From Cycas panzhihuaensis (taxonomy: Eukaryota > Plantae > Cycadophyta), in the NCBI GenBank assembly GCA_023213395.1, contig CM041465.1, positions 233,995,741 to 234,059,740 of the forward strand: DNA of 64,000 bases, in the 5' to 3' direction. Shown piece after piece: positions 1-50,981 of the stretch. Both the position numbers and the translations under genes were made by a program. Positions within the stretch are counted from its first letter, which is position 1; each line of letters begins with the position of its first letter. A model generated the notes under the pieces. The model did not search any database, was not told the origin of the DNA, and saw only the letters and a program-made list of their open reading frames with translations.

Positions 1-1329
1 GCTTAAGAGGGTTATATGCCTCATGAGGGCTATCTTGGTTGTGAGGACTATGAGATACATGTCTATCCTCCTAAGGGCTCTCAGTAATTTGTATGAAATC
101 CCTATAGAGAAAGGTTATTTTAAATACCCTAAGCCACATTTGAGGAATCCATCCTTAGTAGCCTCTACTTCTATTTAGGAAGAGGTACATGTTGATCACA
201 TTGGCCATTTAGTTTCAAAGCCTTTACTCACTAGGATTCATTCTCTTATCCTCATCTTAAGATACTAAGATCCTTTCCATTAGAGCACACACATCATGAC
301 ATTATCCTTGTATCTTCTCCATGACTAACATTAAGAGAAACCTAATCCTCTTCCTTAGGAGCATTAACTCCCTCATGTTAATCATCCCCACATATATAAT
401 ATTCTACCTTCCCCTTATCCCTCTCATCCCTTTACCCAAAGCCACCTTCTATCCTACCTAATGAGATGGGAGACACTAGATCAATCCACTTCCAACCCTA
501 AGCACCATTTAACATTATGAAAGGAGGAGCCTAAGTTCATCCCATGCCCTTCATTTCATATGATATCCCATTTGAGAGTAGTGATTAGAAGCAACATTTT
601 ATCATAGTATATGTATACCAAGCATCCACGTCCAACTAATTCCCTCATCTGAGACCTATCATAGGGCTATCTCTCATGTATAGGTATAAGTTTCTTCACA
701 CTGCTTCACAGGTTCCATCTACTGGTTAACCCATCCCTTCTCATAGTGTCTCTCATCCTGGTAAGGGGATCCTCATCCCCTACCTCATCAAATCATAAGT
801 CATAGTGTGAGACCACCTCCTTTCTAGTCCCATAAAGGGCCTACACCATCTACTCCTCCATACTCCACGTATGATACTTATGTTGGAGTACAAAGGACCA
901 TTGGGGGCTCTCACACTCATGTTCCTCTTGATTAACACATACACCAATAGTAGATTTTGAGACTTGTCAAAGGGCCTATACCATCTTATGGTCCTAGACC
1001 TATTTACCTATAATAATCCAATCTATGACATACAATTCCCCCTCTCTAATATATTATTTCATCATAATAATATCCTATGCCTTAGATAAGAATGCATCTT
1101 AATCATGTTACATGGTTTACTCCTCTACATCCTCCACCTTCTCATCCACCATGCTATGAACATCCCCCATATGGAACTTCCACTCCTTACCAACAACCTC
1201 CTCCTCAAAACTCTTCCATGTTGATGTCAACTCCTCCTCAACACTCTTCCACATTGAGGACTAGAAGGCCTTTATGGACTACATGAGATTCTTTTTCCAC
1301 AAGAGGTTCTCCTTTCATACATACCTCCA

Positions 1330-2110
1330 TTTATCCTTGAATTACCTAAGTTATCTAGGGAACACTCACAAGATCCCACTAGGCATGTATAAGATTTTAC
1401 ACTTGCCTATGTTGACTTTCTCCTATATGACTATGTCATGATGGGATTATTTCCCAAATCACTTCAAGGTGATGCCTTGAAGTGGTTCTTTTATCTCCCA
1501 TCTACTTCCATTTTTACCTTTTAGCAGCTAGTTGATGCTTTTATCAACTACTTAGACATTGTCATACCATTCAAAACTAGCATTAAGTCCCTCCTATCTA
1601 TCAAGAAAAATAATGATGAATTGTCTCATAATCTTATAAGGTAATTCCAAGATTTAGTTCATGTTTATCACTCTCAACTTGATTTAGGACTCTTATTTGA
1701 CATTTTTATCAATGCTTTGAGACCTCATGTATACTTAGAGGTCCTAAAACTTGGTCCACAAACCTACAAGGAGGCCATTGATAAATGCTTAGCTCTCAAA
1801 GCTTTCAATATTCAAGTAGGAATTAAGAAGAAAGACAAGCCTACTCCAGTGAAAGACTTAAATTATAGGCCCAAACCTAGTCAAGGGGATTATACATATG
1901 ATCATGTTGCATCTTCCATTAGAGCCCTTGAGCATACTATCAACACCAAGTTACATGTTAAAAATCCTATTGTTTCTAAGTAAAAACAAGAAACCAAAGT
2001 CATTTGTTATACTAAAGGAAAGAAATGTCAAGATCCCCCTACTCCTTCAGTAAAGAAAGCTCCTTGATATTCTTATTACTAAACCAATACTCATGATCAA
2101 GATGAGTGTC
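1330..2110 (+). pseudogene. T1 gag (retrotransposon gag domain plus degenerate zinc knuckle)
   Basis: Manual translation: DPTRHV..FTLAYVD..MMGLFPKSLQGDALKWFFYLPSTSIFTF*QLVDAF; knuckle-like *YSYY*TNTHDQDEC near 2065-2110; multiple stops. Confidence 0.8.
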
Positions 2111-2739
2111 AGATTATTTAAGCCATGGATTGTAAGATTTAAACTCCTAATAATCCTATATCTGGGCCAAATTAAGACTAATTAATCCACAAATACCCTT
2201 TGCCTCATCATGATCTAACGAAAACTAAGGATAAGATTAAAGGAAATGCCAAATAAAATGATATAAGTGATAGTGAGAGTATGAGCTCTGAGTTAAATAA
2301 GAAATATATAACCTCACTCAAAGGAGGTGGAAAATGAGATAACGACTAAAATTGGCTACCTCCCAAAGGTGGTGACACTAAGAGAACAATTAATATGGTC
2401 AAGGTAACAAAGAACCTAGGCACGTTCAAATCCTTTGAAGATTTATTAACCAAAAATCCTAACTCCTTGTCTCTCATTCCACCTAAACCTATTTATTTTA
2501 GGTCTATTCATTTTACTATAAAATATGGATCTTTCTCTTTAGTTGATGAGTTGAAGTTTATTTCTATTGGGATCTTGGTCATGGACTTGTTAAATAGTTA
2601 TCTAGAGTAATATCAACTCTTACTTAATGACTTGGCGTCCCTACTCTCAACTCCCCAATAAGTCTTACTCTCTCTTTTGATCCTTTCATCTTACCTAGTG
2701 AAAATAAAAGAAACCCTAATGATATCCTCCATTCTACAT

Positions 2740-3090
2740 TGAGATTTGTATGAAGGCTATCAACATTGAATGTGTCATTATTTATGAAGATTCATCAATA
2801 AATATAATCCCTCTCCATCTAGTAGAAGATCTAGAGATTGTCGCCTATGAACCTTATGAGTGGATATGTTAAAGGTATAATAAGAACCAAAAATTACTAC
2901 TAGGGTAAGTCACTCTCCCTCTTACATTAGAAGGGGAAAAAATTATGGTTGATCTCACCATCATAAACCTAGACTCAAAATATAATATTCTCTTAGGAAG
3001 ACCTTGGATCAATCAAATGTTCATTGCTTATTCCTCACTCTTTAGGAAGCTTAAATTCATTCATGAGGGAGAGTTGAAGGTTGTCAAGTG
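2740..3090 (+). pseudogene. T1 aspartic protease
   Basis: VIIYEDSSINIIP (degenerate DxGSSIN) and YNILLGRPWINQM motifs. Confidence 0.8.
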
Positions 3091-4321
3091 AAAAAATATA
3101 CCTATTAAATAATTTATTCCATTTGTGGAAACCATCTTAGAAATAGGGATGCCCTTCAACTCCTCTAAATATTTCTTTTAATCTCTAGGCCTTAGGCAAT
3201 ACTTTGTTACTAAGTCTCTTTCAATGTTTAAATAAGAGGTTAAGGGTATTAACATTATTGATATTATTCCTTTAGGGAAAAGCTCTTCATCACGTCAACC
3301 ATGCATGGGAATGTTTCAAGCCACATTGGAACCTTTCCCAATTCCTACCCCTACAGAAGAGACTTTACCCCTCCACTCTACAAGTTATTTATCCAATAAT
3401 ACATAAATGGAACAAGACCTAATTCATCACACCCCTCCATCGTCACATTAGGCCAATGATGAAAATGGCATGTTATAAGACAATCCCCTTTTATCTCAAG
3501 AAATAAATTCATCAGGTTCATCCTTTAGCAAGCCAAATTTTATGCATATCCTTTACTTACATCATATGAAAGATACACTAAACATTGTTACACCTATTAT
3601 TGGCCCTTCCTGATAAACATGCTTACCTTGATCCACTTCATCCTTATCTAATGGGATATCTTGTCATAAGTCTCATTTTCAAATTGCTTAGTTTAATTAG
3701 CATAGTGAGAAGCTTCTCATGTATAGGAATCTAAACCTCTCACCTCTAAAAGGTAGGGAATCCCCTTCACATACCTCACCTAGATTGAACCCAACACATA
3801 GGAGAGAAATAAAAGAGATTAACATGATTATGACAATCTCTCTCCCAATAAAAGTGATTATTTAGGAGGATACTATACTATCACTCATGCATATATCCCC
3901 TCTCGTAAACCTTCCTCTAATTGATGAGTCTAGCTTTCATCAGATTATACAATCAAATTGAGAATTCTCCACTCAATTTAGTCCATCCTCTCAAATCCCC
4001 GCAATTATAGATATCTTTCTAAATCAAGACCATGTCCTTCCTATAAAGACAACTTCCCTATAATTGCCTCATCATTCTCATTCTTAGCTTGAAGGCTCTA
4101 TCTTTAAAGATCTCCTTCATCTTGATCATTTCAAGAATGTTGAATTGATTCTAGAGCATTTAGTTAGAGCCTCACTTAATATCCTTCCCAATCATCACAA
4201 GCTTGGATTTAATAAGTACTTGCACCTTGATTTATCTTTTGCTAATTTAGATCAACCTTTACAAGATCCTCTATCTTTTTCAAGTCATACTTCTCCTCAC
4301 TTCAAGGAGGGGAATACCATG

Positions 4322-4620
4322 CTTGATGGCAAGAAAATAGATGAAACATACTTGACAAGACTACAAAATAATCTTACTTCTAAGACTAGAGCTCAAGCAA
4401 CTTATGATAAGTAGTTAAGACCTTGTGAGTTTTGTGTTGGTGAGAAGGTACTCAAGCTTGAGTATCTTCATGATAAACAACAAAAGTTTTCCCCAAATGG
4501 GCAAGACCTTATCCTATCATTGAAGACCTCAAGAATGGTGCATATCACATCTCTAACCTTGATGGCCTTGAAATTAAAAAGCCAATCAATTCATAGTTTT
4601 TGTGAATGTTCTATGACTAA
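4322..4620 (+). pseudogene. T1 integrase C-terminal (GPY/F-type) remnant
   Basis: IDETYLTRLQNNLTSKTRAQATYDK*LRPCEFCVGEKVLKLEYLHDKQQKFSPN aligns with the G integrase tail LDKICLTAYQANLTSKAKAQKTHDKHLRP..GNQVLKLEYLYDYLSKFNPKWLGPF. Confidence 0.8.
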
Positions 4621-4639
4621 AAGTAGAGCACTCATAACT

Positions 4640-4890
4640 CTCTAATGAGTATAAACTATGGCTTTGAGAAACCCACCTACTGAAGAGCCTAAACTATGGT
4701 AGTAATCCTTATCTTATGATATGGAAAAAACTTTACAGTGAATATAAACTATGGCTCTGAGAATCTCATCTACTAAAGAGCCTAAACTATGGTAGTCTCC
4801 TCCATCTAGTAAGATGGATCCCCTACCTCTACAACAAGTATAAACTATGGCTTCAAAACCCTTGCCTTCTAATAAGTCTAAACTATGGTT
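4640..4890 (+). repeat. Array of paired TAAACTATGG motifs (3 units of about 93-96 bp)
   Basis: Exact motif at 4652, 4690, 4745, 4783, 4841 and 4879; each pair is 38 bp apart. Confidence 0.95.
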
Positions 4891-5709
4891 GGATTGTCTA
4901 TTTCTTATTAAGACTTGTATTTCCCCATGCCCTATTATGACTCTCAATAACTGTGTAAGACTGTTACTATATTATATTGTATAGGCATCAATTATTGACC
5001 ATGTATACATGGGTCTAAGTTAATACAATTGGGATGATCTCATTTGGTTCATGACACTTTATCTTCCATCTTTTCCTCTTAGGTTATGTACATGGGAATG
5101 TGGGGTCCTCATTCCTTCTTAAGGCATGAGGATAAGAAAAACTCTAAAATAAACATGGTGTTGATTCAAAACTTAGCATACTTAAGAAAAGGAAATGATA
5201 CCTAGAAAGATAGACCCTGATGAGAATCTAGGGCCAAGGAGGGATTTAGTAGGTTATTGGCTCCATATAAACCACTACCTAGAATTAGCCAAGGTGTGTC
5301 TTAGAGATTTATCATTTGTCAATCAGGTTTTTGAATTTGTTTTAAAGGTGGCTAGTTTTCTTGCACAAAGTGTTATATGAACATTAGTCAGTTAGACCTC
5401 CTTAACATTGATAGATATTCCTACAACTGCTCTTAGGTGTGTCTCATTAAACTTTATTTTACTTCTTCTAATCAAAGGTAAGATATAACTTGGTTGCTAT
5501 TCCTAACAAATCAATGTTCCTTTTTTTTGGTAGCTTTTGATACTAGATAAACGAACCAACCTCGGCTTATTGGGGATGGTCCTTGCACAATCTTTCATAG
5601 TTTCTCTTTCTCAAACTAAGGAACACCAAGCTTGAATCACCCTTATATTCCATTCTCTTGAGATTTCCTTGCCCCTTTAAAGAAATAACCATAACATAAA
5701 ACATCCCTC

Positions 5710-5770
5710 TATAATAAGGCTAAAACTATGGCTCTAAAAGCCACACCATCTAATGAGCCTAAATTATAGT
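5710..5770 (+). repeat. Fourth, degenerate motif pair
   Basis: aaaactatgg at 5722 and taaattatag at 5760, again 38 bp apart with gagcc before the second copy. Confidence 0.85.
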
Positions 5771-6613
5771 TAATCCTTCATTCTCTCTCTCTTTTCAAAC
5801 ATCACTTTAGCATAGAAGTATCAGTCCTCCTTTATTGCCATTACTCCTTGATCAAGCTTAATGCTTTCTTGCATGTGAATCATTACCAACAACCATGTAA
5901 GGCTATTGTCCTGCTGCTAGACATAGGCATTATTTATTAGGTACATGCATTCACTTCACTCACTTTAACTAAAGCAATGTTACTCTTCCCTCCCAAGTTT
6001 TGTACTTAGGAGGGAAGGGGGATCCCTAACTTTAATTATCAATATAATAGTAAGGTATAAGTTTAGACAATTAGTTACTTCTATTATGTGAGATACCTTA
6101 TTCCTTTTTAGACTTTCACCCATGGTTTTTGGATCTTGAACTACTTCTTTCTCTTACGATCATATAAGTGTGCTTGGTAGATTTATAGATCTTTCACTTC
6201 CACTTGTTTGGCCTTTTTACTATGGTTCCCAATACCTTTTTACTATTTCTCTTAAAGTTTGTTACACATTCTACCACTACCCCTTCACACTCAAAGAAAC
6301 TTTGGTCTAAAGATCCTTTTAACTCTCTTAGTTTAACCTCTAATAATTTAGGCTCATGTTATCATCTTCTTAGTTTCATTAAAAAGGTCATCCTTGATAT
6401 AGTTTAAGAGGTATCAATGTTTCATGATCAGGTCAATCATCAATTACCTAAGATCATTTTTTCTCCCTCTTCATCATATCTCAATGAAAATTGTATAATG
6501 ATCATAGTCAAAGTGATGAATACCTATCTTCTAGAAAGTGGGTTTAGTAATACATAGTTTACTATGACTGTCATCTAAACTATTGTATAGAATGACCTAG
6601 ATAGTAGTGGAAG

Positions 6614-6620
6614 TATAAAA
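6614..6620 (+). promoter_or_regulatory. Candidate TATA box of the T1 aRH module
   Basis: gTATAAAAgaaagaaaacacccaaaaa matches cTATAAAAagaaaagaacccaaaaa upstream of the G aRH (minus strand, about 51067). Confidence 0.45.
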
Positions 6621-6699
6621 GAAAGAAAACACCCAAAAAAAAAAGTAAAATGAAGAACAATTAGGTTAAGAAAGAAAAGAATCCTTTTATGTTTTCCAC

Positions 6700-7430
6700 C
6701 ATCTTATTATCTATAGAAAGTCATGTGACAACTTTAATTCCACCCACATTATTGCAGTTCGGGTTCATTGGGGTGTATGATTTAAGACCTTCAAATCTAA
6801 TTGCATAGGCTCACCATGGTATCAATTGTGATCAAAACTTATTTGACATCTAATAGTCTTTTACATTTATTTGTGTTTAGGGAGGTATCCTCATTATGAG
6901 GAAACCTAATCATGATCCTATTTCCTCTCATCTTATAGTTGAAACCAAGTCTCTTATATAAAAACCACTTCCTTGTAGGTTGATTCCTATAACATCCCTA
7001 CATATATCATTTTGTCTCTAAGTTTAATCCTCTTTTATTAGGGCACTGAGCATATATACTGATGGAGGTTGTCAATGTAGCTCAAGGCCATCTGATATTG
7101 CATGGGTAGTTTGTGATCAAATAGGTAATATGTTAACTTTTTCTAGCATGTTCCTACCTCAAGCAACCAACAATGAAGTCGAGTACATCACTATCATAGG
7201 AGCCCTAATAAATATCTTGTAATTTCATGATGGTCCTATTGATCTTTTTATTAATTCCTAAATTGTGGTCCTTCAACTTATTAGTGCCTACCATGTTCAT
7301 TCACCTCGATTATGCTCCCTTCATGCTCAAGTTTTATCATTGTTATCCCGCTTCCCATTGATTACCATTTAACATATCTCTCATAGTCAAAATATCAAAG
7401 CTGACTCTCTACTCTCTTATATGTTTTAGT
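6700..7430 (+). pseudogene. Archaeal-type RNase H (aRH; core 7046-7430) with N-terminal extension
   Basis: IYTDGGCQCSSRPSDIAWVV..ATNNEVEY..FINS*IVVLQL..HISHSQNIKADSL. The upstream 6700-7045 is homologous to G 50970-50620. Confidence 0.88.
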
Positions 7431-7469
7431 ATCATAACTCATAGCCTCATCCTTTTGAGCTAGAGGCAT

Positions 7470-7550
7470 CACTCTATAATGAGAATAAACTAACTAAACA
7501 CTCTATAATGAGTATAAACTAACTAAACATTATGTAATGAGTATAAACTA
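7470..7550 (+). repeat. 29-bp tandem repeat (about 2.8 copies) containing the GAGTATAAACTA motif
   Basis: cactctataatgag(a/t)ataaactaactaaa at 7470 and 7499, partial diverged copy at 7528. Confidence 0.92.
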
Positions 7551-7819
7551 AAATTTAAATACTATTATAAGAAAATGCAAAAAAAAAAAAAAAAAATTAT
7601 AGATATATTCAAAACACAAAGAAAAGCATGCACATGAATTCAACACTACACATGTTTACTCATCATCAAGAGGAATAAGGGGGAAGGAAGGTTAGAGAAA
7701 ATCATGTTCTACATAATTAATGATAAAAATGATGGTACAATGTATATATAAATATGAAATACCATATAGTACATGTGTCATCATAAGTATAAAATCATGG
7801 TCTTATAACTTCCATGGGC

Positions 7820-9615
7820 ATGTACACATGCTCATAGGTGAGCTCTTATAGTCACATCCCTATCCCTATTGAGTAGACTCATGCCCATCCCCTCTCAAGT
7901 TTATTCCCATATACATGATCACCCCTATGATGGTTTTCAAGAGCTGGCGTATACTCTCCTTGAATGGCGATTAAGGGTGTGAGTCCTCTCTCTCATATGA
8001 GGGCCATGCCTAGCCTGTTATATGCTCTGACTACCTAACAGAGTCATACATCCACCTACCTATAGGATATTCATCCTATGTAGATATGACCTCTCATCCT
8101 CAGTGGCATTTAGCTCTACCTCTCTTATCTCCAACTTCCCCACCAACTCCCATGTCTTGAGCTTAAATGGTGCATATAAAATACTATGTAAGAGGGCCCA
8201 ATAATTTTGGATCCCTCTTGTTGCCAAATGGGAGACTCTCGAGGGTCCTCCTCACCACTAAGAGATTGATCATCCCCTCACCTATCATATAAACATATAA
8301 TGATTAGTCATTTTTATCAAAACTATTTATCAAAAGAAGATAGTAGTATAAGCTAAATTAATAATGTCTGAACAAAAGTAATAGATACATGTTGGAGGTG
8401 GTACTACCATGATAATTATTAGCTTAGGAATCTCTACTACTCCCTCCTCATTTATTTCTATCTTTGGAGCTCCCTTCGAGCCTAACTCCATGCCATCAAT
8501 AGGGGAGTCACCTCTTGCTACTATTATTGGTTGCTTTATCTAACTAACATCCTTCCCATCCTCTATCCTATTAATATCTCCTCCCTACTCAGTAGTTGAC
8601 TTTCCCTCTCCTCTATCATCATACTCTCAGTCTAACAGGAACCTCATTATATGTTAGATTAACCATCTCCTCCATGGCCACCTCATTTTTCCATATGACC
8701 TCCTACTCCCCCTCCTTTACCCTTATGTGGAGGTGGTAACCCCCTGCTATAGCTCTCTCTACAACATTAGTCTCCTTATCTGACCATGTTAGCATCCTAT
8801 CATATAGGTTAGGAACTAGTTGGTTCCTTGTCATCCTGCTAAGTAGAGGGCTGTGTGCACTCCTCACTATAACTACCTATTTGTCATGGATCTGAGATCA
8901 CATATTCTATCTATTTATCATAGTGTCCATAATGCTCAAGTCCCCCCTGGCTATCCTTCTAGTTTTATCAAAGGGATATGGTTGTATAGTCAACATATTA
9001 GGATCAAGCTATATGAGAATCCTTCTCATCCCTACCTAGAAATGTGTGATAACTATTGGGCCATGCTATTGACAATAAATTTATTCCAATCTATCTAAGC
9101 CCTACCTCACATCATTGAATGGTGCTCACCCATTGAGTTACCACACTCATGTAAGTATGTATCTAGGTGGCTCAGAATACAATAATATAAGCTAAGACTT
9201 TTCTAAGTGCTAAAATTCCCTCTACCTCCCTCATTACCTTAAGGGAGATGCCATGAACTCCAAAATAGTCAACTGACCTAGTTAAGTAAGTGTTCTAGGC
9301 TTGTTGAGCCTCCTCATCCACTACACAACTCTATCATATCTCTATGCCTTTCCAGCTCACTCCCAAGATCCTTCCAATATATTTAGTGGTGATCTTAATA
9401 TCCCCTATCCCACATACTCAGAATACTCTCTCCCTAGGGACCCATAACTTCACAAAATCATTTATAACCTCATACTCCATCACTAGTTGGATGGAGCGAT
9501 TAGCCCTTATTAGCCCACATTGCTATAAAAGTTGCTACTTATTAACTATCAACACCTCGAGCAATGGTTTGATAACCCATCCTTCATTCTCTTGTGTCTC
9601 AATCCTGTAGATGGG
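7820..9615 (-). pseudogene. Antisense plant-mobile-domain (PMD)-like gene of T1; intron 8282-8388
   Basis: Minus translation QCGLIRANR..INDFVKLWVPRERVF*VCGIGDIKITTKYIGRILGV and IDWNKFIVNSM..FSYSLILIC*LYNHIP resemble the PMD W..TF...GE.TIT..DV..ILG and W..EH.P motifs; acidic tail; the 3' end is approximate. Confidence 0.7.
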
Positions 9616-10125
9616 CTATCAAATAAAAACTATAACTTTAAGATAGTTTCAAGCTCTGAAATCCTAAATTAAGAAAAGTACTTAACGTTTCTATTTTCTT
9701 TAATTTATATAAAAAATATAGTAGTAAGCCCAAAAATGCAATAAGCTAACCAAAAATATAATAAGCTAGCCAAAAACACAATAAACTAACCAAAAATGTA
9801 CTCCACCAAACTCGTTATTTGGAATATTATATTTTTTACTAATTCTTTATATTTTTTTATGAATAACTCATGTTTTTGGTGAATTCTTTTATGTTTTTGA
9901 AGAAAAATTATAGAAAATTGAAATACTTTCAATTAATAACTTACTAGATATCATGCCTCTCACTATATCCTCACTTATTTGATCTGATATTATCCTCTGA
10001 TCATTAAAATAGCTCTTGAAATTATTGCAATATTGATCTCAAAGATGAAAAACATCTCTTAATCTTAACTCTTACACATGAAAACAAATTGAAAAGGGAC
10101 CCATTTTTCCTTATAAAAATGGCCT
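9616..10125 (-). promoter_or_regulatory. Candidate TATA (about 10115), first exon and first intron (9944-9616) of the T1 antisense gene
   Basis: Minus strand: ggccatttttataagg..cccttttcaatttgttttcat, GTAAGT donor at 9944, T-rich intron, tttgatAG acceptor at 9616. G has the same layout. Confidence 0.55.
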
Positions 10126-10453
10126 CTCTCACATGATAATTAGGTCTTCCAATTGTCTTCTTTGAGAAGTTTCAATATAGGTGCAATGTAACTTGTAAAT
10201 TTGGATTTCTCCGAAGGATTTTGATCATAAATTTTTCTCACCCTTTTTGCCTTCCATTAATAAGGCCATCATGTTGAGATAAATTAGAAATTTGACCTAG
10301 AGATGGACTGCTTATAACCTATTCATGGTTATACTCCATGGGATTAATTTCTCACCTACATTTCAAATTCCATATCTCTTTTGACCTCTAAGCCTCCTTG
10401 AAATTCAAGACCCTCTAAAATCTTATAGTCTTACTCACTCGAGATATGGGATG

Positions 10454-10565
10454 GTCACTATTGAGGTAAAACTATGGTGATCACCCCTTTAAGGCATTAC
10501 TAATGAGGTTAAACTATGACAACCAAACCTCCAAAAATAGGTGTTAAAAAGGCTAAACTATGGCA
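10454..10565 (+). repeat. Three AAACTATG motif copies at the end of the T1 internal region
   Basis: Copies at 10468, 10510 and 10554. gtcactattgaggtaaaactatggtga matches G minus-strand copies at 49635 and 50107. Confidence 0.88.
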
Positions 10566-11445
10566 ACCACCCCCTCTTAAAACCCCATCAACATGATGGG
10601 CAATCTAGTATTAGGTTAAAGTTTGAATGTGACAATGTAAATTGCTTTCTCGAGCCACCCTTATTCTATTCTAATGGAATGTCCTTCATCACATTCATAT
10701 CCTACATACTCATCATCTAATCTAGCCTTTGTTTTAGCTTAGGAAACGAGCCCAAGCCATCCCAAATTTGAACCTCACTCTAGTCCTAAAAGCCAAATTA
10801 CCATCTTTCACCATCTTGCTCTTTATCATTATTAAGAGCTTCTAATGGTAAGTGTGCAAATGTTTCACCATAACTAGCCCTTTTAGTATAATTAGGCTCA
10901 TGTCTTCATTTGTTTTCTAAAATTTCTTATTAGTTATAGTGTTTTATATTCATACAAGATATCAATTGGTTAATATCTTAGTTATGAATTTCTTTTGGTT
11001 GATCATTTCTTAGTCTAGTCTTTAGTTTGGATATGTATGCACACTCATCATTTGATTTTAAGTTGATGGATTACCAATTAGATGATTAAATGGATGTGAT
11101 TATGATGATCTTTTTTTGTTGATGACTAATACTATGATGTGATTTAAAGCTCTTATCTAGCATAGTTTGTACATTGCTCCAAATTTCCTCTTTTTAACCA
11201 ACTTTTTATTCAATACTATAAAATGCTTTGATCAACTATTGCCTTGTTTCTAGTATTTTTTGGCATCTACCTATAGTGATCTACTTTTTATTGAAGTCTT
11301 TACTGACTTTGGAGGCCCCAACAAGTTGTTTTTTATGAAAATTACCTTTTATTTCTATTTTTCTAGTATTTCTAACTTGTCATATTTTTGGCAACACAAA
11401 AAATATGACTTTATAAATAAAATGTAATAATTATGTTATTATTTA

Positions 11446-11827
11446 TGTTAAAATAATGTTTTATATTAATGTTATGTAATGTTATCTTTATAAAAAATAT
11501 ATATATTTAATTAAAATTTTAGTGAATGGACCATTGTCCATCTAATAAACTTTACATTATCATTATCATTAAAATTATACAAGGATCTTCTTGCATTGGG
11601 TTGGCTTGGATAAGTAGGATAGGCTAGATGGGCTAATTAATAAAGAGAGAGAGGATGAGATCCTTCCTATAATATGCATTATGATATATCTATAAAATAC
11701 ATATTTTTCAAGGTGGTTTTTCTTTCCCTATAGGGGTTTTCCACTATCTAATCTCTTGTGTATATCTATATGATTAATTTGTGCACGATTCATGTATAAT
11801 ATTTCTTGTATACTCCTCTCTCCAACA
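11446..11827 (+). repeat. Copia A 5' LTR
   Basis: tgttaaaataatg..tccaaca, followed directly by the PBS. Confidence 0.95.
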
Positions 11828-13659
11828 TGGTATCAAAGCACATTGGAGAATTTCACAAGTCTTTCTATCTAGAGAGATTCCTTAGCCTCATAAGTGGACA
11901 ACCATAACATAGAGCAATAAAAGCAATGGAATTTGAGGAGCTAATACCCTAAAGATCAAAGAGGTGGTTGTCCAATCTATGTGACTTAAGATTAGTGGTA
12001 GACTCACTTAATAGTACCTGATACTTGCATGTTGCTATGTGTATTTGTGCCCTACATGCACCATGAAGAATTGTCATTAATGAATTGCATTGACTACCCC
12101 TACATGGTATGAGTCATTATCCTATATTATTGTGGATATCCTCTTTCTCACTCTATGCAACATCTGGTGGGTACATTGCAAGGCTAGTGACATCTTTGTA
12201 TATGACTATACTTTAGTGCTTATACCCAATAGATGACCAAACATTAGAGATTTTAACATTTTGTTATGAGGTGTTCTTCAAGGTCTACATTTACTATTTA
12301 AAAGGCATGAAGTTAGAAGGTGAAAATAGCCACCATTAAAAGACACACAGCTATGAACTCACACAAGTCAAAGAGATTGAAGATGCACCTACCATCAAAC
12401 ATAGAACAAAGGGTAATCATTAAATAGAGAACAATTCAAAACATTACACATAAATGTCAATATCACTACCCCTCAATGAAGGAATTCTATATGTATGTAG
12501 AAGGCTCTAAATACAAATAAAGATCACAAAGGAAAAAATAAAACTTTGAAGCTACCATTACGAAGATCCCTTTTTCCTTTTGTAGATACATCTCACATAG
12601 ATGCACCAAAAAATCACAAAATAATTAAGTGATTAAATCATGTGGAGATGCCAAAACTCGTGCAACCCTATATAAATCATCGATAAATTTGATGAAACTG
12701 TAAAGTTTTAGGAATAAATATTTCATATATTCAACTATTTTTATAATTTGGAAAAATCCAAATATTTATTAAATTCTTTGTAATCTTTTTACAAATGCAA
12801 AAATAATTCATTTTGGTTTATTATATTTTTGGGTTTGGAGCCCCTTTACCCTTATCCCCCAATCCTATTACCCCCCCATATGACCTTACCTTATGGTGTA
12901 AAAGGGGTTTAACCCTTTAATTTTTAGCCCCTCTCATTTTCATAAAGGGTTATCCATATGTTTTTTACCATAACTTCATTATTCGAAGTTCAAATTCAGA
13001 ACTAGAAGTTGTGTTGGATTCCTAACTCAAACACCTTTGATTTGGCTGGTTATTTGAGTATTTTTAAAACTTCTTTGATGGGTAAAACTATGATCAAAGT
13101 GAACAAAACCAATCACAACCCAGGTAAGTGTAGGTACATAATATAATCTATCAAATTTCTTTATATTTTTTTAATATTTTTAATTCAATTTAATATCTTA
13201 TTGATCATTTATTAAATTTATAAATTAATAACATCATTATATCCCTCCCTTTTTAACAAATTCATTTAATTTATTAGTAATCAATGGGATTGTTATTCTA
13301 ATATTATTTATTTACAAAACTTTTAATTTAATCTTTAATATTTATGCTTACAAATATATTTTTTAAATAATACAATTAATTAAAGTGTTTAAAAGGGTCA
13401 CCCCCCTAAACTTATTTTATAAATTACATAATTTATTTGTAAACATATTAATGCATCTTTATTTTCAATAAATTAATATTATTATACTTTAATTTGGAAA
13501 TGAAATTATTATGATTATATTAATATTTCATGTTTATGGCTTAATATATCAATCATTTTAATTTGGAAGCTTCCTTTTCATCATACACCTTATATTTTCT
13601 TTTCACTTTTTTGTCATCAAAGAGGATCTCTTTATTTGAGATTATTTTTCCCAAAATAG

Positions 13660-16600
13660 TTATTATGCCTGGGACAATCTCTTCTACCCAAATTCTAGTT
13701 CTAATGATGCAAATTATATTGACTGCAAAGTCAAGGTATCTGGCCAACTTAAAAAATACAAGCTTTAGCAGTACATGACTAGGGAGTTTATAAAACTTAG
13801 AGATACAAAATCAGAGGCCTATATGATCTATCCGATGAATTGTGATAGAGCCCTATACACCATCTTAACCTCTCTCTTATCAGACATATGTAAGCAATTC
13901 AATAAATTAGATGAATTTGCCATTGTATAGGCTCAGTTAAAGGAAAAGTACAATAAGGTAAATACTACTCAAGTTGTCGTGCTTGAATAAAAAATGTATG
14001 ACTTAAAATATGAGGATTTTTCTAGAGTTGAAGAGTTTTTATCTAACTTTTAACTTATAAATATAGATATAGGAAACTATATTAAATTAATAATTAAGGA
14101 AGGTGGTAAAACCATAACCATAACCCATGCCAAAGATGATGATACACTTGTTCGTCTTGCTATCAACAAACTTCCAAAATCTTTCAATCAATATAAAACT
14201 ACTAGACAATAGTGTGGGCACCCATAATTTTATTTATCAACTAACAAACTAATTAGTTGAATACTAGGCTATGTTAATTTAAATAAGAAAAATTAAAAAT
14301 CCTTCTTAGGCTTTTTTTTTTTCAAAAATGAAGCCACAAAATAAACCCAAAAAGAAAAATAATTAATAAAATAATCACAATAATCATCCTAAATCTTAAA
14401 GACCTTATAGAGGTCATTCTTTAAATAATAATTATAATCAAAATTCTAAATATTTTGAATCATCTAAAAATCAAAACTCACCTAGGTGAACATTTCAAAC
14501 AAAGAATACTTTTAGACCTCATCACAATTAAAACATTAGTTGTACCTATTGCCATAAAAAGGGGTACACAATAGATGTTTGTAGAAATAGAATAGTGTTT
14601 GAAGCTTGGAAATCTTTAAAAGGGATTCAATCATGATCTCATAATTACCTAATTATTTCTACTTCTACCTTTTCTGTACTTACTACCCAATAACCTTTAT
14701 GAATTCTAGATTATAGTGCTTTCCACCACATGATAGAACATCAAGAATACTTATTTACTTATTAACTTTATTCCAATTCCAAAGAGAAAATCTCTTTTGG
14801 TAGTGATTTTCAACTAAAAGTTGTAGGAACATGTGAAGTAACCCTAAAAAATAACTCTATTAATGATGCTTTTTATGTTCTTAGATTATTACCTAATATG
14901 TTATCTATATATCAGATTTTCCAAAAGGACCTTATAGTCAAATTTTGGAAAGATAAGTTTATTATTAAATAACCTTTCAATAGATTTAAACCTATTAACT
15001 CTAGACCTACTAATCATAAAATATATCTTCATAGTCTAAATAACTTAAATCATTCAAAATTTAAATCATTTACTACCTTTATAACTAAGCTTGATGCTAC
15101 TAATAAGTTATGGCAAGCAGGTTTTACCCATACAAGTTATGGCAAATTGTATTACCTAAACCAATATGATATAGTTCATAATTTTCCACCTTTATGTACA
15201 ATGTATCGTGTTTGTGAAGCTTGTGTAATAGGCAAATAATACATAGACCCCTTCCCTTATCAAACCACATTTTAAGTAAAATCACCACTCAAACTTGTTC
15301 ATTTAGATATTTCTAGTCCCTTCCAAGTACCCTCATATTCTAGAAATAGATAATTTATAACTATTATCAATGGTTTCTCTAAAAAGTATTAGGTTTACAT
15401 GGTAAAGAGTCAAGGTCATGTTTTTAATATTTTTGTTAAATTTAAAATGTTGGTTAAAAATCAATACAACTTTAAAATTAAAATTTTTCATATTAGATAA
15501 TGTAAAAGAGTATTTAAGTAATGAATTTACTTATTTCTATAAAAAGAACAAAAATATTATGTTGCTTAGACTCTCCAACAAAATGGTGTTATTAAATACA
15601 AGAACTATACATTGGTTGAAATAACCAAATTCATATTATGTGTAAAAGGTTTTAATTTAAAATTATGGACTGAAGTAATAGCTTGCTCTAATTATCTATT
15701 AAATAGGTTACCAACAAAAGCTTTAAACAGTGTTGCATCATAACAAAAGTAGTCTAGATGTAAACCTTCAATAAAGCATCTGAGAATCTTTGGAAGCATT
15801 TCTTAGGCACATGTTCCTAAAGAGAAGTATCAGAAAATTAACCTAAAATGCTCCAGGCTTATCTTTGTTGGTTATAGAAAAGAAAGTAAAGATTATCGAC
15901 TATTAGATCTTGTCATGCACATTATTTTGATTATGTATGATGTTATTTTTAATGAAGATGGATCTTCATCAAACTTTAATTCTGGATAAATTAATCTTCC
16001 TATTGAAAATATTTTAACTAATATTATTTCGATTAATTTTTCAGAAAAATAAATTAAAAATAAAATCATTAAAATCTTATCAACATAAGTCTAAAACTAG
16101 ATTCTAATCGAATCGAATAAATATGATCCATTATCTTCTTCAAATCAACCTTCTAGAAATAAACAACCAAAATGGATTCAAAAAACCCTTTTTTATACTG
16201 ATGTTAATGATGGTAATCCTTCAGATACCAGAAAAATTAGATCATAAAAATTATAAGCCAATTTTACCTTAATAGCTAAAGTAATAGCTAATAATGATCC
16301 TAAAACCTTTCAAGAAGCTCTTAACAATCTAGTATGGTAACAAGCCATGCAAAGTGAGCATGAAGATCTGCTAAAAAACTCAACTTGGGACTTAGTACCA
16401 TTACCTTTAAGCAAAAAAATGGTAGACTGTAAATGGGTCTATTGTACTAAATACAACTTTAAAGGAGTCGTCAAAAAGCATAAAGCATGTTTAGTAGCAA
16501 AAGGTTTCTCTCAAATAGATGGTATTGATTATATCAATCCATTTGCCCTTTTTGCTAAATGAATACTATAAAAAATGTTATTATACTTATAGCCAAGTTT

Positions 16601-17790
16601 GACTAGTAAATACATCAAATGAATGTCAATAGTGCTTTTCTTAACGATGATCTTACTGAAGAAATTTACATGTCCCAACCCCCCAGTTTCATTACTAATC
16701 TTAACCTTGTTTGCAAATTAGAAAAATCTTTATATGGCCATAAATAAGCCCCTCGAGCTTGGTATATTAAGATTGATAATTATCTTATTCAAAATGGTTA
16801 TACTAAATGTATAAGTGACCCTAATCTTTATTTGAAACAACAAAATAATAATATTACTATGTTAACTTATTATTATAATAGGATCCTTATACTCTAATAT
16901 TATTCAATTAAAATCTATCCTTATGGACAAATTTGAAATGACAAACTTAGGTCTTCTTCACTACTTTCTCAATTTATAAATCTATCAATATAAATCTTCA
17001 ATTTCTATTTTATAACCTAAATATATACATGACTTAATTAAAAGATTTAATATGGAGAATTCTAAACTAGCTCCAATACCTTTATAAATAGGTATAAAGT
17101 TATCAAATGATTATCAAACATATATATGTGATCCTACTTTATATCATCAATTAATTAGAAGTATTACATATTTAACCTATATTTGTCAAGACATTTTCTA
17201 TGTTATTGCTATATGTTCTAGGTACATACAAAAACCTTACGAATCACATTAGAAAGCAATGAAATGGATCCTATAATATCTTCAAGGTATAATTCATTAT
17301 AGTTTAACCTATAACTATTATAATTTTGACCTTAAGTTATCAGGTTATATAGATTTGGATTAGGTAAGTGATTCTGATAATCACAAATCTATAACTGGAT
17401 ATATTTTCTTGCTTAATTCTTCTCCTATTACTTGGTCAAATAAAAAGATGCAATCCCTTGTATTATCTACAATAGAAGTTGAGTATTATGCATTGGTAGA
17501 AACTAGTAAAGAATCTTTATGGATTACATCTTTACTACATGAACTTGTTTTATTTTCTACTTCTTTCATTCAAATTAAAGTTGATAATCAAAGTGTTATT
17601 TCTATTGCTACTAATCCTATAGCATATTCTATAACTAAACATGTAGAATTGCATCAATATTTTATTCATAATCATGTGAATGATAGTACTATTAATCTCT
17701 CTTATTGTCTTATAGATTTGTAGATTACAGACATATTAATGAATCCCCTAACAAAAGTCAAGTTTGTAAAGTTATAAAAAATATTGAAGG
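13660..17790 (+). pseudogene. Copia A gag-PR-INT-RT-RH
   Basis: CTYCHKKGYTIDVC knuckle (14541), *ILDYSAFHHM protease, LVHLDISSP integrase, STWDLVPLP..CKWVY..LVAKGFSQ RT, ITWSNKK..EVEYYAL..VDNQSVI RH. The YVDD segment appears deleted near 16860. Confidence 0.93.
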
Positions 17791-17804
17791 TCAATGAAAT
17801 CTTT

Positions 17805-17870
17805 ATCAAAAGGGGATTAACATTCTAAAGTCTTCATCAAAAGGGGATTAACATTCTAAAGTCTTCATCA
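17805..17870 (+). repeat. Perfect 31-bp tandem duplication upstream of the Copia A PPT
   Basis: atcaaaaggggattaacattctaaagtcttc at 17805 and 17836. Confidence 0.95.
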
Positions 17871-17915
17871 TTCTTTTTCTTCCTCTCTTGTACTGAAGAT
17901 AACATTGAAGGGGAG

Positions 17916-18301
17916 TGTTATAAATAATGTTTTACATTAATATTATGTAATGTTATCTTTATAAAATATTTATGTATTTAATTAAAAGTTTAGTGAATAG
18001 ATCATTGTCCATCCAACAAACTTTACATTATCATTTTTGTTAAAATTATATGAGGATCTTCTTAAACTAGGTTGGATTAGATTAATCAGATAGGCTAGAT
18101 GGGTTAACCAATAAAGAGAGAGAGGATGAGATCTTACCTATAATATGCATTATGATATATCTATAAAATACATATTTTTTGAGGTTTTTTTTTTTTTTCC
18201 CTGTAAGGGTTTTCCACCTGTCCAATTTACTATGTATATCTTTACAATTAATTTATGCATGATTCATGTATAATCTTTCTCATATGCTCCTCTTTCGAAC
18301 A
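17916..18301 (+). repeat. Copia A 3' LTR
   Basis: tgttataaataatg..ttcgaaca, colinear with the 5' LTR. Confidence 0.95.
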
Positions 18302-19230
18302 AGTTATATATCACATTTTTTTACTATCATACCCATAAGCTTTTAGGTAGAACACTAATTTTACATAATTTTCACTATGGAACCTACCTAGATTTGGAGT
18401 TTGGTGTCGCCCCAACTACCATGATTCATTCGTGATTATCTCACCTACCCCTATTCCAAGATTTTTTGGTTGTAAATTAGCTAAACTATGGGAAGAAACC
18501 ATAGTTTTCTTACCCATCCTTCCTCCTCTCATTTCTTATGAATCCCTATGTGCTTACCATAAGGATATAACAAAGGGTAGAGGATAATCCTTAATGTAAT
18601 GAAGTGCTACCCAAGTTTTGCTAGCCCTTATTACTAATATCTTGTTACTTCTTAGAGGTAGATTGAAGCTTATCTTTTTAGGAGATTGTAAATTTTGTTG
18701 GAGGAATTGAAGGTCTACTCTTACCTCAATCACCATCTAATTCTTAAATTCCTCCTCCCACTCACCTATTGAGGTCTTCTTCTTACAGTTTCAACTAGTT
18801 TTTATCTATATTTTTCTCTCCTACAACATCCCTTACTATCAAATTCATCATTCATATGATATTTAAAGCTTGATGGAAATTTGTTAGACATGATTAAAGC
18901 ATCATTTTGAGGCATACAACACTAATTATTTCTCATATTAGAGGTAACTCTTTTGTTAAATTAATTGTTGGTTTCAAAAATTAGATTAGCTTGCTTTAGA
19001 TTCATCATTAAAAAAAGAAAAGTCTTTTCATTGTTATTTATTTCATTTTCCATGAAAGCTTAATTGATCTTTCTAATTTGTTTGGGTGATTTGACTTGGA
19101 TTCAAACCAATTTTAATTCCCAAGCCTGTATCACATTGTTAGAATCATAAAAAAACGTTGTCTTAGAGTATTGAACTAGTTTTAATCCTTGATTATGACC
19201 TCCATTAGGCAAGTCCATTCATATATCTCC

Positions 19231-19646: not shown

Positions 19647-21019
19647 AGTGGTATCAGATCTACGTTACGATCGTGGGATGATGCCCAAAAAAAATAGAAT
19701 TTTTTTTTTCCTATAAGATCAAGTACTCTCTCTACCCTAGTAGAGATCGAAGAAAGACCTTTACTTAGTACTCTCTCCATAGAGATTGAGGATTAGTACT
19801 AGGATAGTCTAAGAGTTGGGAGAAAAAGAAATTTTTTTTTGTCCTAGTTAATGCCAATACTTTATCCTTTTATTTTTCATCTAGTTTTAATTTCATTTCT
19901 ATATTTCAATTTTTGTATTAGATTAAATCTCAAGGGTAGATAACACTATTGGGTAGCTACCCTTTCTTCCTCCCACCTCTTTTCTCGGGTAGATAACACC
20001 ATTGGGCAGCTACCCAAGTAGTTATGTAGAGACCTTACACCAGGGGTCTTTAAATATCACAGGGATCTATCATTTTGGCTAAGCGTATCATGGTTCTTTC
20101 ATCTCTTATGTGAAGGACTAGAGATAACACTCTTGAACTAAGCCCTGGATAGGACTTGGCTATAAAAGTGTGCCTTCACATACCTTTGGGTATATAAGAG
20201 GACCCCTTTAGGTCCCAATTCCTTCCTAGCATAGGCAACTATCGATCGATGAAGTATTGTAGTACAATGGTTAACGATTAGTACCATGAAGCTACCTACC
20301 CTGAACTTTTACAGTTTATTGGCATGCCTATAAGACTAAGCATACCTTGTCTAGTGGTTAGTAGGATACTCTAATATATATATTCCACTTCCAGGTTTAG
20401 ACCACAAGTCACCTTATATTTTGAAAAAAAAAAAAAAATCTCTTACTCCCTGAAATCAGAACCTATCAATATAGTTAGGCTCACTACAGAAAAGGGGAAA
20501 AAAAGAGAAAAAACAAGGAGAAGAAAAAAAGAAAAAAAATAAAAGAAAAGAAAAAAGCAAAAAAGAGGAAAAGAAAGCAAGAAGAAAGAAGAACTAAAAA
20601 AAAAAATCCACTATCACACTTCACGGTGTAAGTTCACAGTGAAACAAATGTACCCTTATAACTATATACCTCATTTTGATTAGCACATCATACTGGTCAA
20701 TTTGTACTAGGTTAGTACATATGAGTAATTTTTATATTTTTCAATACCCAGTCAATGGCAGGCCCCACAACCCCTAACCTCCCCTACACCTCATATACCC
20801 CATTTGAATGAGCTTTTCATACTTGTTCGAGAGAACCTGATATCTTACTTATGTAAATTTTTGGGGTCAACAGGCTATAAACACCCCACAATCTCCCTAT
20901 TTGTCCCCTTCTCTTCTCTCTAACAACTCCCTAATTCTTACATCATGTTCTTTCTTAATCTTTCCCACATCATTCATCGCCCTTCTTTCTACTTATTCTT
21001 GCCTCTTTATGCCCTTTCT

Positions 21020-24000: not shown

Positions 24001-25560
24001 GACTTTATAATCACATATAAAAAGAGGAAAGATAACATTGTGGAAGATGCTCTCTCGATACTACCTTCCCCTACACTTGACGATAACACCTATCACATTG
24101 AGGACCACACCATTTATGTCATTTCTTCCCCACAACCGATGTGGCTACAAGACTTAGCCATGGCTAACCAATCCCAACCAGATTTCTCACATTAGGCTAA
24201 TAAGGTCCACACTCATAAGGATTAGTCTATTCGTAATAATCTTCTCGTATACTAAAATTGTATATTTGTACACCCCTACTTAGCTTTTATTCTATGAATT
24301 TTATCAAAATATCATTCTTCCCCTCTTGGTGATCATTCTGGTTTTGATAAAACTTATCGTTGGATACATTCTGACTTCTTTGGCCAAAAATGAAATCCAC
24401 CATCCTTACCTTTATCTCTAAATGTAACACATGCTAATATAACAAAGCCAATATGAAATCCCAACAAGGCCTCCTTCAACCGTTGCATATCCCACAAGGT
24501 AAATGATAAGATATTGCCATGGACTTTATAATGGGCTTACCACTATCTATCGGATCTGACTCCATTTTAGTAGTCATAGATAGGTTAATGAAATATGCCG
24601 ACTTCTTACCTATCCACACAACCTATAAGGCTCCATGTATCATTGATATTTACCTCTAGATAATATTTCATTTGTATGATTTTCCATCCGCTATCGTTTG
24701 TGACTGCAACCCTAAATTCACTAGTTCCTTCTAGTAGGAGTTATTTCATATATCAAGAACATCATTCGATATGAATTTGGCATACTATCCATAGACTAAT
24801 GGCTAATCTAAGATCCTTAACAAAACTCTAGAGACCTACTTACGTTGCTTTACATCTAACCACCTGTCTAAATAGACATCATAGCTAGTCCTAGCTGAGT
24901 ATTAGTATAACTCCTTACATCATTTAGCTATTGGAATGTCCCCATTTTTTGCTTTCTATGGGTATCCCTCATCGTTCCACCATACCTTGGCTACCAACCT
25001 CTGCACAATAGTTGTACAACAAAAACTACAACATATGAACCAAATTCTCCACACCCTTAAATAAAACATATCCATGGCCTAGAATCGAATGAAATAATTA
25101 GTAGACTGCCACTGCTCTGATTACTTCTTTAATATTGGTGATCTTATATTCCTTCATCTCCAACCTTATAAGCAATAATCCCTTCATCATCATAAAAACC
25201 ACAAACTTAGCCCTCGATATTATGGCCCCTATAAAGTCCTTAAATATATTAGTAAAGTTGCATATGCTCTCAACCTTCCCCCCACCACCAACATCCATAA
25301 TGTTTTTCATATATCCTATCTTTAAAAGTGTCTAAGCAAAACCCATATCCCTAAACAAACCTTCTAATTCTAGATGAAGAGCAAACCTTGTCTGTACCTC
25401 TAGAATGTACACTTGCTAGCAAACAATAGTATCTCTGGAATTGATCCATTTCAGAATATTTAATACAGTGGATAGGTTGCAACTTGGATGAAGCAACTTA
25501 AGAATCTGATGATTTTATCAAAGAGAAATGGCATCTCACATGCCTCGAGGACTCACATCT
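21020..25560 (+). pseudogene. Gypsy B gag-PR-RT-RH-INT-chromodomain
   Basis: ASIHLDGKAHHWF gag; [21 protein letters not shown] and FFNDILI RT; LECDASGFGLGAVLMQ RH; IAMDFIMGLP integrase; YYGPYKVL; EYLIQWIGCNLDEAT*E chromodomain-like tail. Confidence 0.93.
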
Positions 25561-25574
25561 CAGGGGAGGAGACT

Positions 25575-25990
25575 TGTTACATAACTCATCTCACTAAGTT
25601 ATATAAAACACTATTATATGGAGAGCTATTGTGAGGTTAAGAGATAAGGTTAATTATGAAACTTCATGCATGAGGCGATAAGCTGGCCAGTGGTATGCAA
25701 GGCTGCTATGTCATCTAATAGAACATAAGGCCACTTAGGCCACTAATAGGATTGCATATAAAAGACCATCTTTTAGCTATATAAGAGTCATAGATTATAA
25801 ATGATGGTTAGCTTGACGTAACTTTTTACAAAGATTGTGTTGTGGTACTCTCTATTTTGGTGATCATTTTTAACTCTTATGTTCTTGTGAGATTCTTTAT
25901 TAATTTGTTTTCCCTATTGGATAGAACAAAGTGGTTGCATTTGTTATTTTTCTGCTATCTCAAGGAGCACTTATGGGAAGATACGTCCCA
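25575..25990 (+). repeat. Gypsy B 3' LTR
   Basis: tgttacataactcatc..gtccca. Confidence 0.95.
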
Positions 25991-50970: not shown

Positions 50971-50981
50971 TATGCCCCCTT

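Follow-up and report, generated by a model that had tools for sequence, protein, structure and literature searches.

Swapped accessory genes and conserved motif arrays in the 3' regions of two decayed Tat-type retrotransposons of Cycas panzhihuaensis

The stretch of Cycas panzhihuaensis DNA analysed here (64,000 nucleotides, referred to as the window, whose coordinates are used throughout) is densely packed with nested LTR elements, among which five LTR pairs were found. T1 on the plus strand and G on the minus strand are decayed Tat-type Ty3/gypsy elements; the comparison is one of two elements, both full of stops. G carries a Ty3/gypsy reverse transcriptase (56749–57201; Pfam RVT_1, 4.6e-11) followed by a gypsy-type RNase H (56034–56414; RT_RNaseH, 2e-13) and by an integrase tail (54814–55068, minus strand), which was delimited by its tblastx pairing with the T1 tail. 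A young element is nested within G at 58426–63393. The pol remnant of T1 is the C-terminal tail of integrase alone (4319–4596, plus strand; stop at 4594–4596 read from the sequence), and tblastx and Pfam detected no reverse transcriptase, RNase H or integrase core in this element. Comparison of the T1 tail with G 55068–54814 gave 45–53% amino acid identity (tblastx) and 67% DNA identity; as T1 has no detectable reverse transcriptase or RNase H, its membership of Tat follows only from its homology to G. In both elements an additional RNase H of archaeal type (aRH) lies downstream of the integrase tail, as in TatIII or lineage III of gymnosperms, a published class in which aRNH follows integrase and the 3' end bears a PMD eORF in antisense (Ustyantsev et al., 2015, PMC4408406; Neumann et al., 2019, PMC6317226). 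The distance from the pol stop to the start of aRH is 2.4 kb in T1 and 4.2 kb in G, and in neither element does aRH appear to form the C-terminus of the Pol polyprotein.

The aRH of T1 is a stand-alone ORF (7037–7417, plus strand) with in-frame stops, and its start codon is now absent. Its counterpart in G (50263–50625, minus strand) has kept an ATG at about 50623, with in-frame stops beyond. Pfam RVT_3 (7.9e-7) and RNase_H match T1 at 7028–7219, and full-domain tblastn with RNase HI proteins covers 7037–7417 in T1 and 50625–50263 in G; the sense aRH read earlier in both elements is therefore confirmed, by Pfam and tblastn in T1 and by tblastn in G. Amino acid identity between the two is 42%. 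A HMMER search of 1.84 billion representatives with the 64-aa aRH piece of T1 returned 23 matches, the three closest being short ORFs on contigs of 1–2 kb. The position of the aRH start is common to three database relatives, and in the relatives, as in G, the ORF begins with Met right at the fold. A conserved region upstream of the T1 gene (6615–6850, plus strand), made up of an A-rich block at 6615–6650 and a second block at 6690–6850, aligns to G 51065–50810; the corresponding region of G (50810–51267, minus strand) holds a 120-bp tandem duplication around (TA)n, the A-rich block and the conserved block. An A-rich tract follows aRH in G (49680–49873, minus strand), and G 49873–49816 is matched (E 9e-4) by the A-rich tract that follows array B in T1 (7553–7603, plus strand).

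A homologous unit lies antisense to both elements, at 7620–10392 in T1 (minus strand, multi-exon and heavily decayed) and at 51802–54493 in G (plus strand). In G it is not at the 3' end; it is interposed between pol and aRH. Eight ordered HSPs lead from T1 10392→7626 to G 51802→54364 with an E value of 2.5e-5, as compared with 0.11 or worse for 11 shuffled or reversed control sequences. The earlier note had called this unit an antisense PMD gene: the homologous antisense unit is present in both elements, but PMD found no profile match. Pfam was run on 20 stop-free pieces from the antisense units, units 1 and 2 (below) and the gag/pol of T1. No stop-free piece of the antisense units matched PMD, and among the pieces searched the matches were confined to aRH in T1 and to RT/RT_RNaseH in G. 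A 71-aa PMD-like piece of G retrieved nothing by ESM Atlas or by word-index protein search, and the PMD N-terminal signature is visible by eye only, at T1 9534–9346 (minus strand) and G 52821–53009 (plus strand). The data support two self-contained accessory genes, the antisense unit being a separate gene and aRH having its own start position.

Every inter-module gap holds copies of a motif of about 20 nt, ATGAG-NN-TAAACTA-TGG. On the plus strand between 4601 and 10600, TAAACTA occurs 13 times, or 2.2 per kb, as compared with about 0.2 per kb elsewhere. Array A (4640–4915, plus strand) begins 44 bp after the pol stop and comprises 2.6 copies of a 93-bp unit, with six exact TAAACTATGG copies at 4652–4888 that lie two per unit, 38 bp apart. 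The 38-bp spacing is found again in a fourth motif pair, at 5722 and 5760 (5707–5778, plus strand). A stem of 5–6 bp is kept in four copies of the 38-bp motif pair, with one compensatory change; the idea of an RNA hairpin was nevertheless rejected, since array A folds no better than shuffled sequences (z −1.6). Rfam and tRNA scans gave no match.

Unit 1 (4916–5706, plus strand) and unit 2 (5779–6574, plus strand), which had been taken for gene modules, are unrecognisable as genes: neither has detectable coding or homology, they resemble neither each other, G nor the rest of the window, they have no Pfam match, and G holds no counterpart. The motif copy at 6576 is a marginal half-motif (6575–6589, plus strand) with three mismatches to CTAAACTATGGTAGT, a level expected by chance in the window, and the counterpart stretch in G is without the motif. 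Array B (7470–7551, plus strand), with 2.8 copies of a 29-bp unit of the variant TAAACTAAC, matches G 50013–49993; its copy number varies among contigs, with joints that go back in four runs. Array C (10450–10580, plus strand), before or at the start of the LTR, has distinct units at 10468, 10510 and 10554, each of which matches a unit of G. Tandem arrays of variable copy number are thus present between pol and the 3' LTR. A further array, of a related half-motif (9730–9797, plus strand; 3.4 copies of 20 bp), lies inside the antisense unit and has a weak counterpart in G at 52658 (minus strand); motif copies are therefore not restricted to the edges of modules. The layout of T1 given in the earlier note therefore stands for aRH, the antisense unit and most motif arrays, but its integrase is a tail alone and units 1 and 2 are lost from it as genes; motif copies do lie in all gaps, although the 6576 copy is marginal and a related array is found within the antisense unit.

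In G, array A' (54600–54790, minus strand) runs from the pol stop on and contains four variant units, TAAACTGC / TAAACTAC, as a four-copy array at 54764–54611. A motif at 51516–51504 that had been described as degenerate proved to be genuine: it carries the rare AAACTATRRTGAT, which occurs three times in the window as compared with 0.04 expected, and it retains the left flank of the T1 10468 unit. This decayed counterpart of the 10468 unit (51493–51545, minus strand) lies beside the 5' flank of the antisense gene. The units that follow aRH (49993–50150, minus strand) include one at 50116, whose right flank is of the T1 10468 type, and one at 49999 of the array B type, while two units before or at the LTR start, one at 49644 and one near 49370 (49340–49676, minus strand), were matched to T1 units. 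A matrix made solely from T1 copies matches 50116 and 49644 strongly, and this, together with the variant array, bears out the remaining motifs reported in G.

The pre-LTR units pair one by one between T1 and G (85–96% over 23–34 nt, as against 67% DNA identity for the integrase tail and 42% protein identity for aRH), the placement 'pre-LTR' being approximate, with both 5' LTR starts outside the window. That these units are positionally orthologous across very diverged families suggests conserved function rather than turnover. The units are also mosaic: G 49644 has its left flank in common with T1 10468 and its right flank with T1 10510. A stronger statement, that the pre-LTR units of T1 and G had exchanged flanks reciprocally, was dropped in favour of this one because T1 10510, in its left flank, resembles the two G units to about the same degree. 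In both arrangements a 10468-type unit adjoins the 5' flank of the antisense gene, and a TAAACTAAC-type unit with an A-rich tract lies downstream of aRH; the gene-attached units look like parts of the genes' flanks. A metagenome scan with a pre-LTR unit gave a single match, dismissed as chance, in a coding-dense, phage-like contig (L001).

T1 reads aRH then antisense unit and G reads antisense unit then aRH, with orientations unchanged. Since the antisense units are homologous and collinear, and the aRH genes match, the swap of order with kept orientation that the earlier note described is real. Where synteny between T1 and G breaks, the breaks abut motif units. Homology of the pre-LTR block, for example, begins exactly at T1 10450 and G 49662; to the left lie the 5' flank of the antisense gene in T1 and the A-rich tract that follows aRH in G. 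The junctions of the T1 family recur in paralogous contigs of about 80% identity, which bridge array A and unit 1 (one contig, about 81% identical, spans 4771–5242), unit 1, the fourth pair and unit 2 (one spans 5590–5882), and aRH and array B. Upstream of 10441, the sequence is common to 31 contigs in one run.

A composite origin, in which separate elements, nested or neighbouring, make up T1 or G and the order is accidental, is extremely unlikely. The density of the nest, the young element within G and the missing RT core of T1 would all suit such a composite, and hidden LTRs or TSDs at module edges had been named beforehand as evidence against the cassette reading discussed below. A scan of the module edges, however, found no LTR pair and no TG..CA with TSD, and the recurrence of the T1 junctions in paralogous contigs also argues against a composite. 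The sole LTR/TSD-like match, 5754/6573, was rejected because the motif itself produces it. Separate gain or repositioning of aRH or PMD at different sites, with arrays that are unrelated hypervariable repeats, is very unlikely. It would agree with the repeated acquisition or shuffling of aRNH proposed for the Tat clade (PMC4408406), and with the frequency of tandem arrays in this region (PMC11963269), but non-coding flanks of both genes (the upstream blocks of aRH, array B with its A-rich tract and the 10468-type unit) are common to T1 and G, and the arrays are demonstrably related between families.

The earlier note had proposed an integron-like system, in which the motif is a dedicated joint for RT template switching or recombination, so that cassettes are repeatedly cut out, inserted and put in a new order there. 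We consider this quite unlikely. Self-contained genes, the swap, motif copies in all gaps, breaks that abut motif units and the mosaic structure of those units accord with it, and motif-bearing bins draw far more contigs than do the modules. Some contigs also join A-type to B- or C-type units; the sides of these joints are only 19–29 nt, often with extra letters between, and their reading as deletions was rejected in favour of mixed arrays elsewhere. An integron analogy would call for many orders or contents as well as a dedicated joint. Against it, the orders seen are two, those of T1 and G; motif unit types remain with their genes; the pre-LTR units correspond by position in deeply diverged families; and paralogues of about 80% identity keep the T1 junctions. 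In addition, units 1 and 2 are non-genes, and the only recombinase seen is the remnant of the element's own, retroviral-type integrase. Because a non-coding repeat confined to non-coding gaps must fall between genes, much of the boundary pattern is forced. Nor are the sites found only at every cassette boundary, given the array at 9730–9797, the chance-level 6576 copy and the tandem arrays. It is similarly doubtful, and in our view improbable, that the arrays are hot spots of RT template switching between co-packaged RNAs of related Tat families, at which accessory genes and their flanks are exchanged and reordered as modules in a retroelement version of cassette shuffling, the motif doubling as the binding or processing signal needed by each module.

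Another explanation is that the motif copies are duplicated replication signals (polypurine-tract/LTR-terminus-like or PBS-like) spread by aberrant strand transfers. The best-conserved units are indeed those at the LTR or immediately ahead of it, several run into TGG and then PBS-like strings, and an A-rich purine tract directly precedes the G 49644 unit. The motif itself, however, is not purine-rich, and LTR ends and PBS could not be located within the window; we regard this explanation as unlikely.

We favour a different account, whose chances of being correct as a whole we put at about even. The region would be the pol-to-3' LTR part of two ancient, decayed gymnosperm-type Tat members (TatIII or lineage III), T1 probably being a copy with an internal deletion. 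It would encode two compact accessory genes, each expressed separately: aRH, standing alone with about 125–130 codons, and a multi-exon, PMD-like gene in antisense. The gaps between genes hold short tandem arrays built on a single conserved motif of about 20 nt, with specific units for each gene flank: upstream of the antisense gene, after aRH with the A-rich tract and after the pol stop, with three before or opening the LTR. Since specific units belong to specific gene flanks, we infer that they are most likely cis-acting signals for regulation, processing or replication, whose copies were multiplied by slippage. The opposite order would then distinguish the families, having arisen on one or a few occasions and been inherited stably since. 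Direct repeats of about 20 nt, when scattered along one RNA, are known to serve RT as a substrate for deletion, duplication and recombination. The mosaic units, and the position of breakpoints next to motif units, are compatible with a swap caused by recombination between such repeats; the swap probably arose in this way, either by RT template switching between co-packaged RNAs or by DNA recombination. G has an extra 10468-type unit between aRH and its B-type unit, which a single cut-and-paste event does not explain.

At present these findings are a descriptive refinement of a published element class, from dead copies. The two papers on TatIII (PMC4408406; PMC6317226) do not describe conserved motif arrays in all gaps. 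With TatIII the elements share a Ty3/gypsy backbone, aRH past integrase and an antisense extra ORF in the 3' region that may be of PMD type, the order of T1 being that of the published scheme. They differ from TatIII also in that aRH is a separate ORF 2–4 kb past the pol stop rather than the Pol C-terminus, and in that the antisense gene of G sits between integrase and aRH.

Macas and colleagues reportedly described, in 2009, the POL-3'LTR region of Retand/Ogre elements as one with tandem-repeat arrays and antisense ORFs. A recent account gives the same features for this region (Vicient, 2025, PMC11963269). The elements here likewise have a long 3' region outside pol, accessory ORFs in antisense and tandem arrays that vary in copy number. 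The Retand/Ogre arrays, however, are described as hypervariable and family-specific and the accessory domain is TRP28, not PMD, whereas here two families too diverged to be recognised as related in their DNA have kept the same motif and individual units.

The likeness to integron attC sites lies in self-contained genes, each with a one-sided repeat, in an order that differs between two arrays; but here no site-specific recombinase is seen, nothing points to circular cassettes, the orders number only two, and repeats occur also inside a gene and in tandem arrays. Mosaic motif units fit template switching at direct repeats as known from retroviral reverse transcription; what the two old copies show is end products, not a recombination event itself. 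If the orders and the gene-linked units hold genome-wide, accessory genes of LTR retrotransposons would be movable modules with their own flanking signals, and a defined sequence would be available whose role as a signal in regulation, processing or recombination could be tested. This touches on the question of how extra genes enter retroelements and become rearranged in them, for which retroviral env and accessory genes offer the comparison.

The window holds decayed plant LTR retrotransposons, nested together and with five LTR pairs; its GC content ranges from 26 to 40%, and ORFs longer than 80 aa are nearly absent. Of the two Tat-type elements compared here, T1 runs from the window start to ~10.6 kb on the + strand, and G extends, on the − strand, from ~49.3 kb past the end of the window. 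G is split by a nested young LTR element (58426–63393; LTRs of 418 bp, 96.7% identical), which sits between the G 5′ LTR/leader and G pol; G is very old, as its own LTR remnants are only ~69% identical to each other. The four further LTR pairs (11446/17916, 19233/25577, 27453/34617 and 38727/45992) are 84–90% identical. DNA-level matches between T1 and G are confined to the integrase (INT) tail (67%) and short motif blocks. GC skew is −0.15 to −0.3 on the T1 strand, with the mirror sign on G, so that sense strands are poor in G relative to C; the skewed regions (1–10000, 20000–26000 and 50000–54000) are decayed elements, and differences from paralogous contigs are mostly transitions. This strand asymmetry is not expected from symmetric methyl-C deamination alone.

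In G pol, Pfam matched RT (RVT_1) and a gypsy-type RNase H. No RT, RNase H or integrase core was detected in T1, either with Pfam or by tblastx against G pol, which gave nothing upstream of 4319. Just 1.2 kb separates a protease-like stretch (2909–3088; identified by eye, no Pfam match) from the start of the INT tail at 4319, and T1 therefore seems to be a non-autonomous copy or one with an internal deletion, its accessory region still in place. The T1 ‘INT’ of the earlier note is thus the tail, which closes with a stop at 4594–4596, without the core.

The archaeal-type RNase H gene (aRH), in sense orientation, was confirmed in both elements: T1 7028–7219 is matched by Pfam RVT_3 and RNase_H, and RNase HI proteins align over the full RNase H length with T1 7037–7417 and G 50625–50263. 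The two genes share 42% amino-acid identity over 119 residues. It lies 2.4 kb (T1) and 4.2 kb (G) from the pol stop. To judge from sequence, aRH is probably a small separate gene rather than the end of Pol, because its three closest database relatives have their Met-Ala start right where the first strand of the fold begins, and the ATG at that position is kept in G, while lost in T1. Common to both elements are an A-rich block and a ~150-bp conserved block upstream of aRH (T1 6615–6850, G 51065–50810), and a B-type motif unit and A-rich tract downstream (T1 7470–7603; G 50013–49993 and 49873–49816). An identical 15-mer, AAGTCATGTGACAAC, occurs at T1 6718–6732, just upstream of the aRH block, and inverted at G 51394–51408, in the gap between the antisense gene and aRH; its core has a second, direct G copy at ~50945. 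It may mark a promoter element common to both elements, or be due to chance (E 0.13). The same G gap holds a 120-bp tandem duplication (86% identical) flanking a (TA)31 microsatellite (50993–51267).

The antisense units of T1 and G are homologous and collinear, with eight ordered HSPs (E 2.5e-5); one reversed and ten block-shuffled controls all gave E 0.11 or worse. No stop-free piece of them matched Pfam, and two further searches were blank. Their putative identity as PMD genes comes from the best-kept stretch (T1 9534–9346(−)/G 52821–53009(+)), which by eye resembles the N-terminal PMD signature, and from literature on the clade (PMC4408406). A (TA)59 tract (54148–54265) lies at the 3′ end of the G antisense unit.

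T1 units 1 (4916–5706) and 2 (5779–6574), which the earlier note had listed in its layout of T1, show no similarity to one another, to G, to the rest of the window or to Pfam. They are nevertheless genuine parts of the T1 family, since paralogous contigs, ~80% identical, bridge their junctions. These came from four DNA runs of three organisms, placed on 4600–10599 at at least 80% likeness, as short contigs only. T1-type junctions are present in the diverged paralogues, and array B varies in copy number among contigs. Motif bins draw many more contigs than modules; such depth does not measure copy number. Apparent inter-array joints, whose sides are <30 nt and often separated by other letters, are read as mixed arrays elsewhere, not deletions.

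Aligned copies of the motif read roughly CTAATGAG-NN-TAAACTATGG, with a tenfold excess of the 7-mer core on the T1 sense strand. On the + strand of T1 they form array A (4640–4915; six exact cores, paired 38 bp apart), a fourth pair (5722/5760), array B (7470–7551, the TAAACTAAC variant) and array C (10450–10580; three distinct units); the antisense unit itself contains a related 20-bp array (9730–9797). A weight matrix built from T1 copies only found two strong sense-strand matches in G, at 50116 and 49644, and a variant array of four units, A′, follows INT there (54764–54611, − strand). The copy proposed at T1 6576 is at chance level, and the aligned G stretch is unlike the motif. The degenerate G copy at 51516–51504 held up: AAACTATRRTGAT, a pattern defined after its sites had been seen, occurs three times in the window (T1 10469, G 50103 and G 51504) against 0.04 expected, and the 51504 site retains the GGTCAC left flank of the T1 10468 unit. 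A unit of this type lies beyond the 5′ flank of the antisense gene in both elements (T1 10450–10490, G 51545–51493). All three T1 pre-LTR units have G counterparts (50116/49644, 49644 and ~49370), 85–96% identical over 23–34 nt. No other DNA in the 3′ region is as well conserved as these short blocks, which take up 130 bp in T1 and are scattered across 800 bp in G. The sole metagenome match to a pre-LTR unit (L001, 1644–1666) falls at a ribosome-binding-site/start-codon junction in a coding-dense phage-like contig and was dismissed as chance. At 18481–18508, just outside the 3′ LTR of element 11446–18317, an exact TAAACTATGG faces its own reverse complement 7 nt away (AAACTATGG-GAAGAAA-CCATAGTTT); this pair may be a further piece of T1 LTR or flank, or chance.

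After the pol stop, T1 runs through array A, unit 1, the motif pair, unit 2, a block of upstream blocks, aRH, B and A-rich tract, a block of antisense gene and 10468 unit, and the 10510 and 10554 units to the LTR. G runs from the pol stop through A′, the antisense gene with its decayed 10468-type unit, a block of upstream blocks, aRH, 50116 unit, B-type unit and A-rich tract, and the 49644 and 49370 units to the LTR. All three adjacencies differ, with motif units in each gap. A mosaic of separate nested elements is an unlikely source of these orders: internal LTR-like repeats are absent, and TG..CA ends with a TSD appear at module edges only in one coincidence created by the motif itself, so the hidden LTRs or TSDs that the earlier note had considered did not emerge.

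During reverse transcription, template switching is known to occur at direct repeats of this size that are dispersed along the template. The motif would suit such switching, as the earlier note had proposed in casting it as a joint in an integron-like array of accessory genes; the changed adjacencies with motif units in their gaps agree with this, and one breakpoint does fall within a few bases of a motif unit's left edge (T1 10450, G 49662). The G 49644 unit, moreover, combines the left flank of T1 10468 with the right flank of T1 10510, probably a mark left by exchange inside the core. Against a dedicated joint of integron type, just two orders are seen here, T1 junctions are stable in paralogues, the motif is found inside a gene too, and an unbiased matrix scan of G gave no significant association with block ends. 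The ‘boundary’ pattern is also partly forced, because non-coding repeats can sit only in gaps. Despite the deep divergence, unit types stay with the same genes and in the same positions, which suggests a conserved role in cis and not interchangeable joints. One cut-and-paste also leaves the extra G unit at 50116, between aRH and the B-type unit, unexplained, and several events therefore separate the two families.

No description was found in the literature of a stand-alone aRH gene, of an antisense gene placed between INT and aRH, or of a conserved motif that is tied to the genes and present in each gap. In the layout published for gymnosperm lineage III/TatIII, aRNH follows INT at the C-terminus of Pol, and the 3′ end carries an antisense PMD extra ORF (PMC4408406, PMC6317226).
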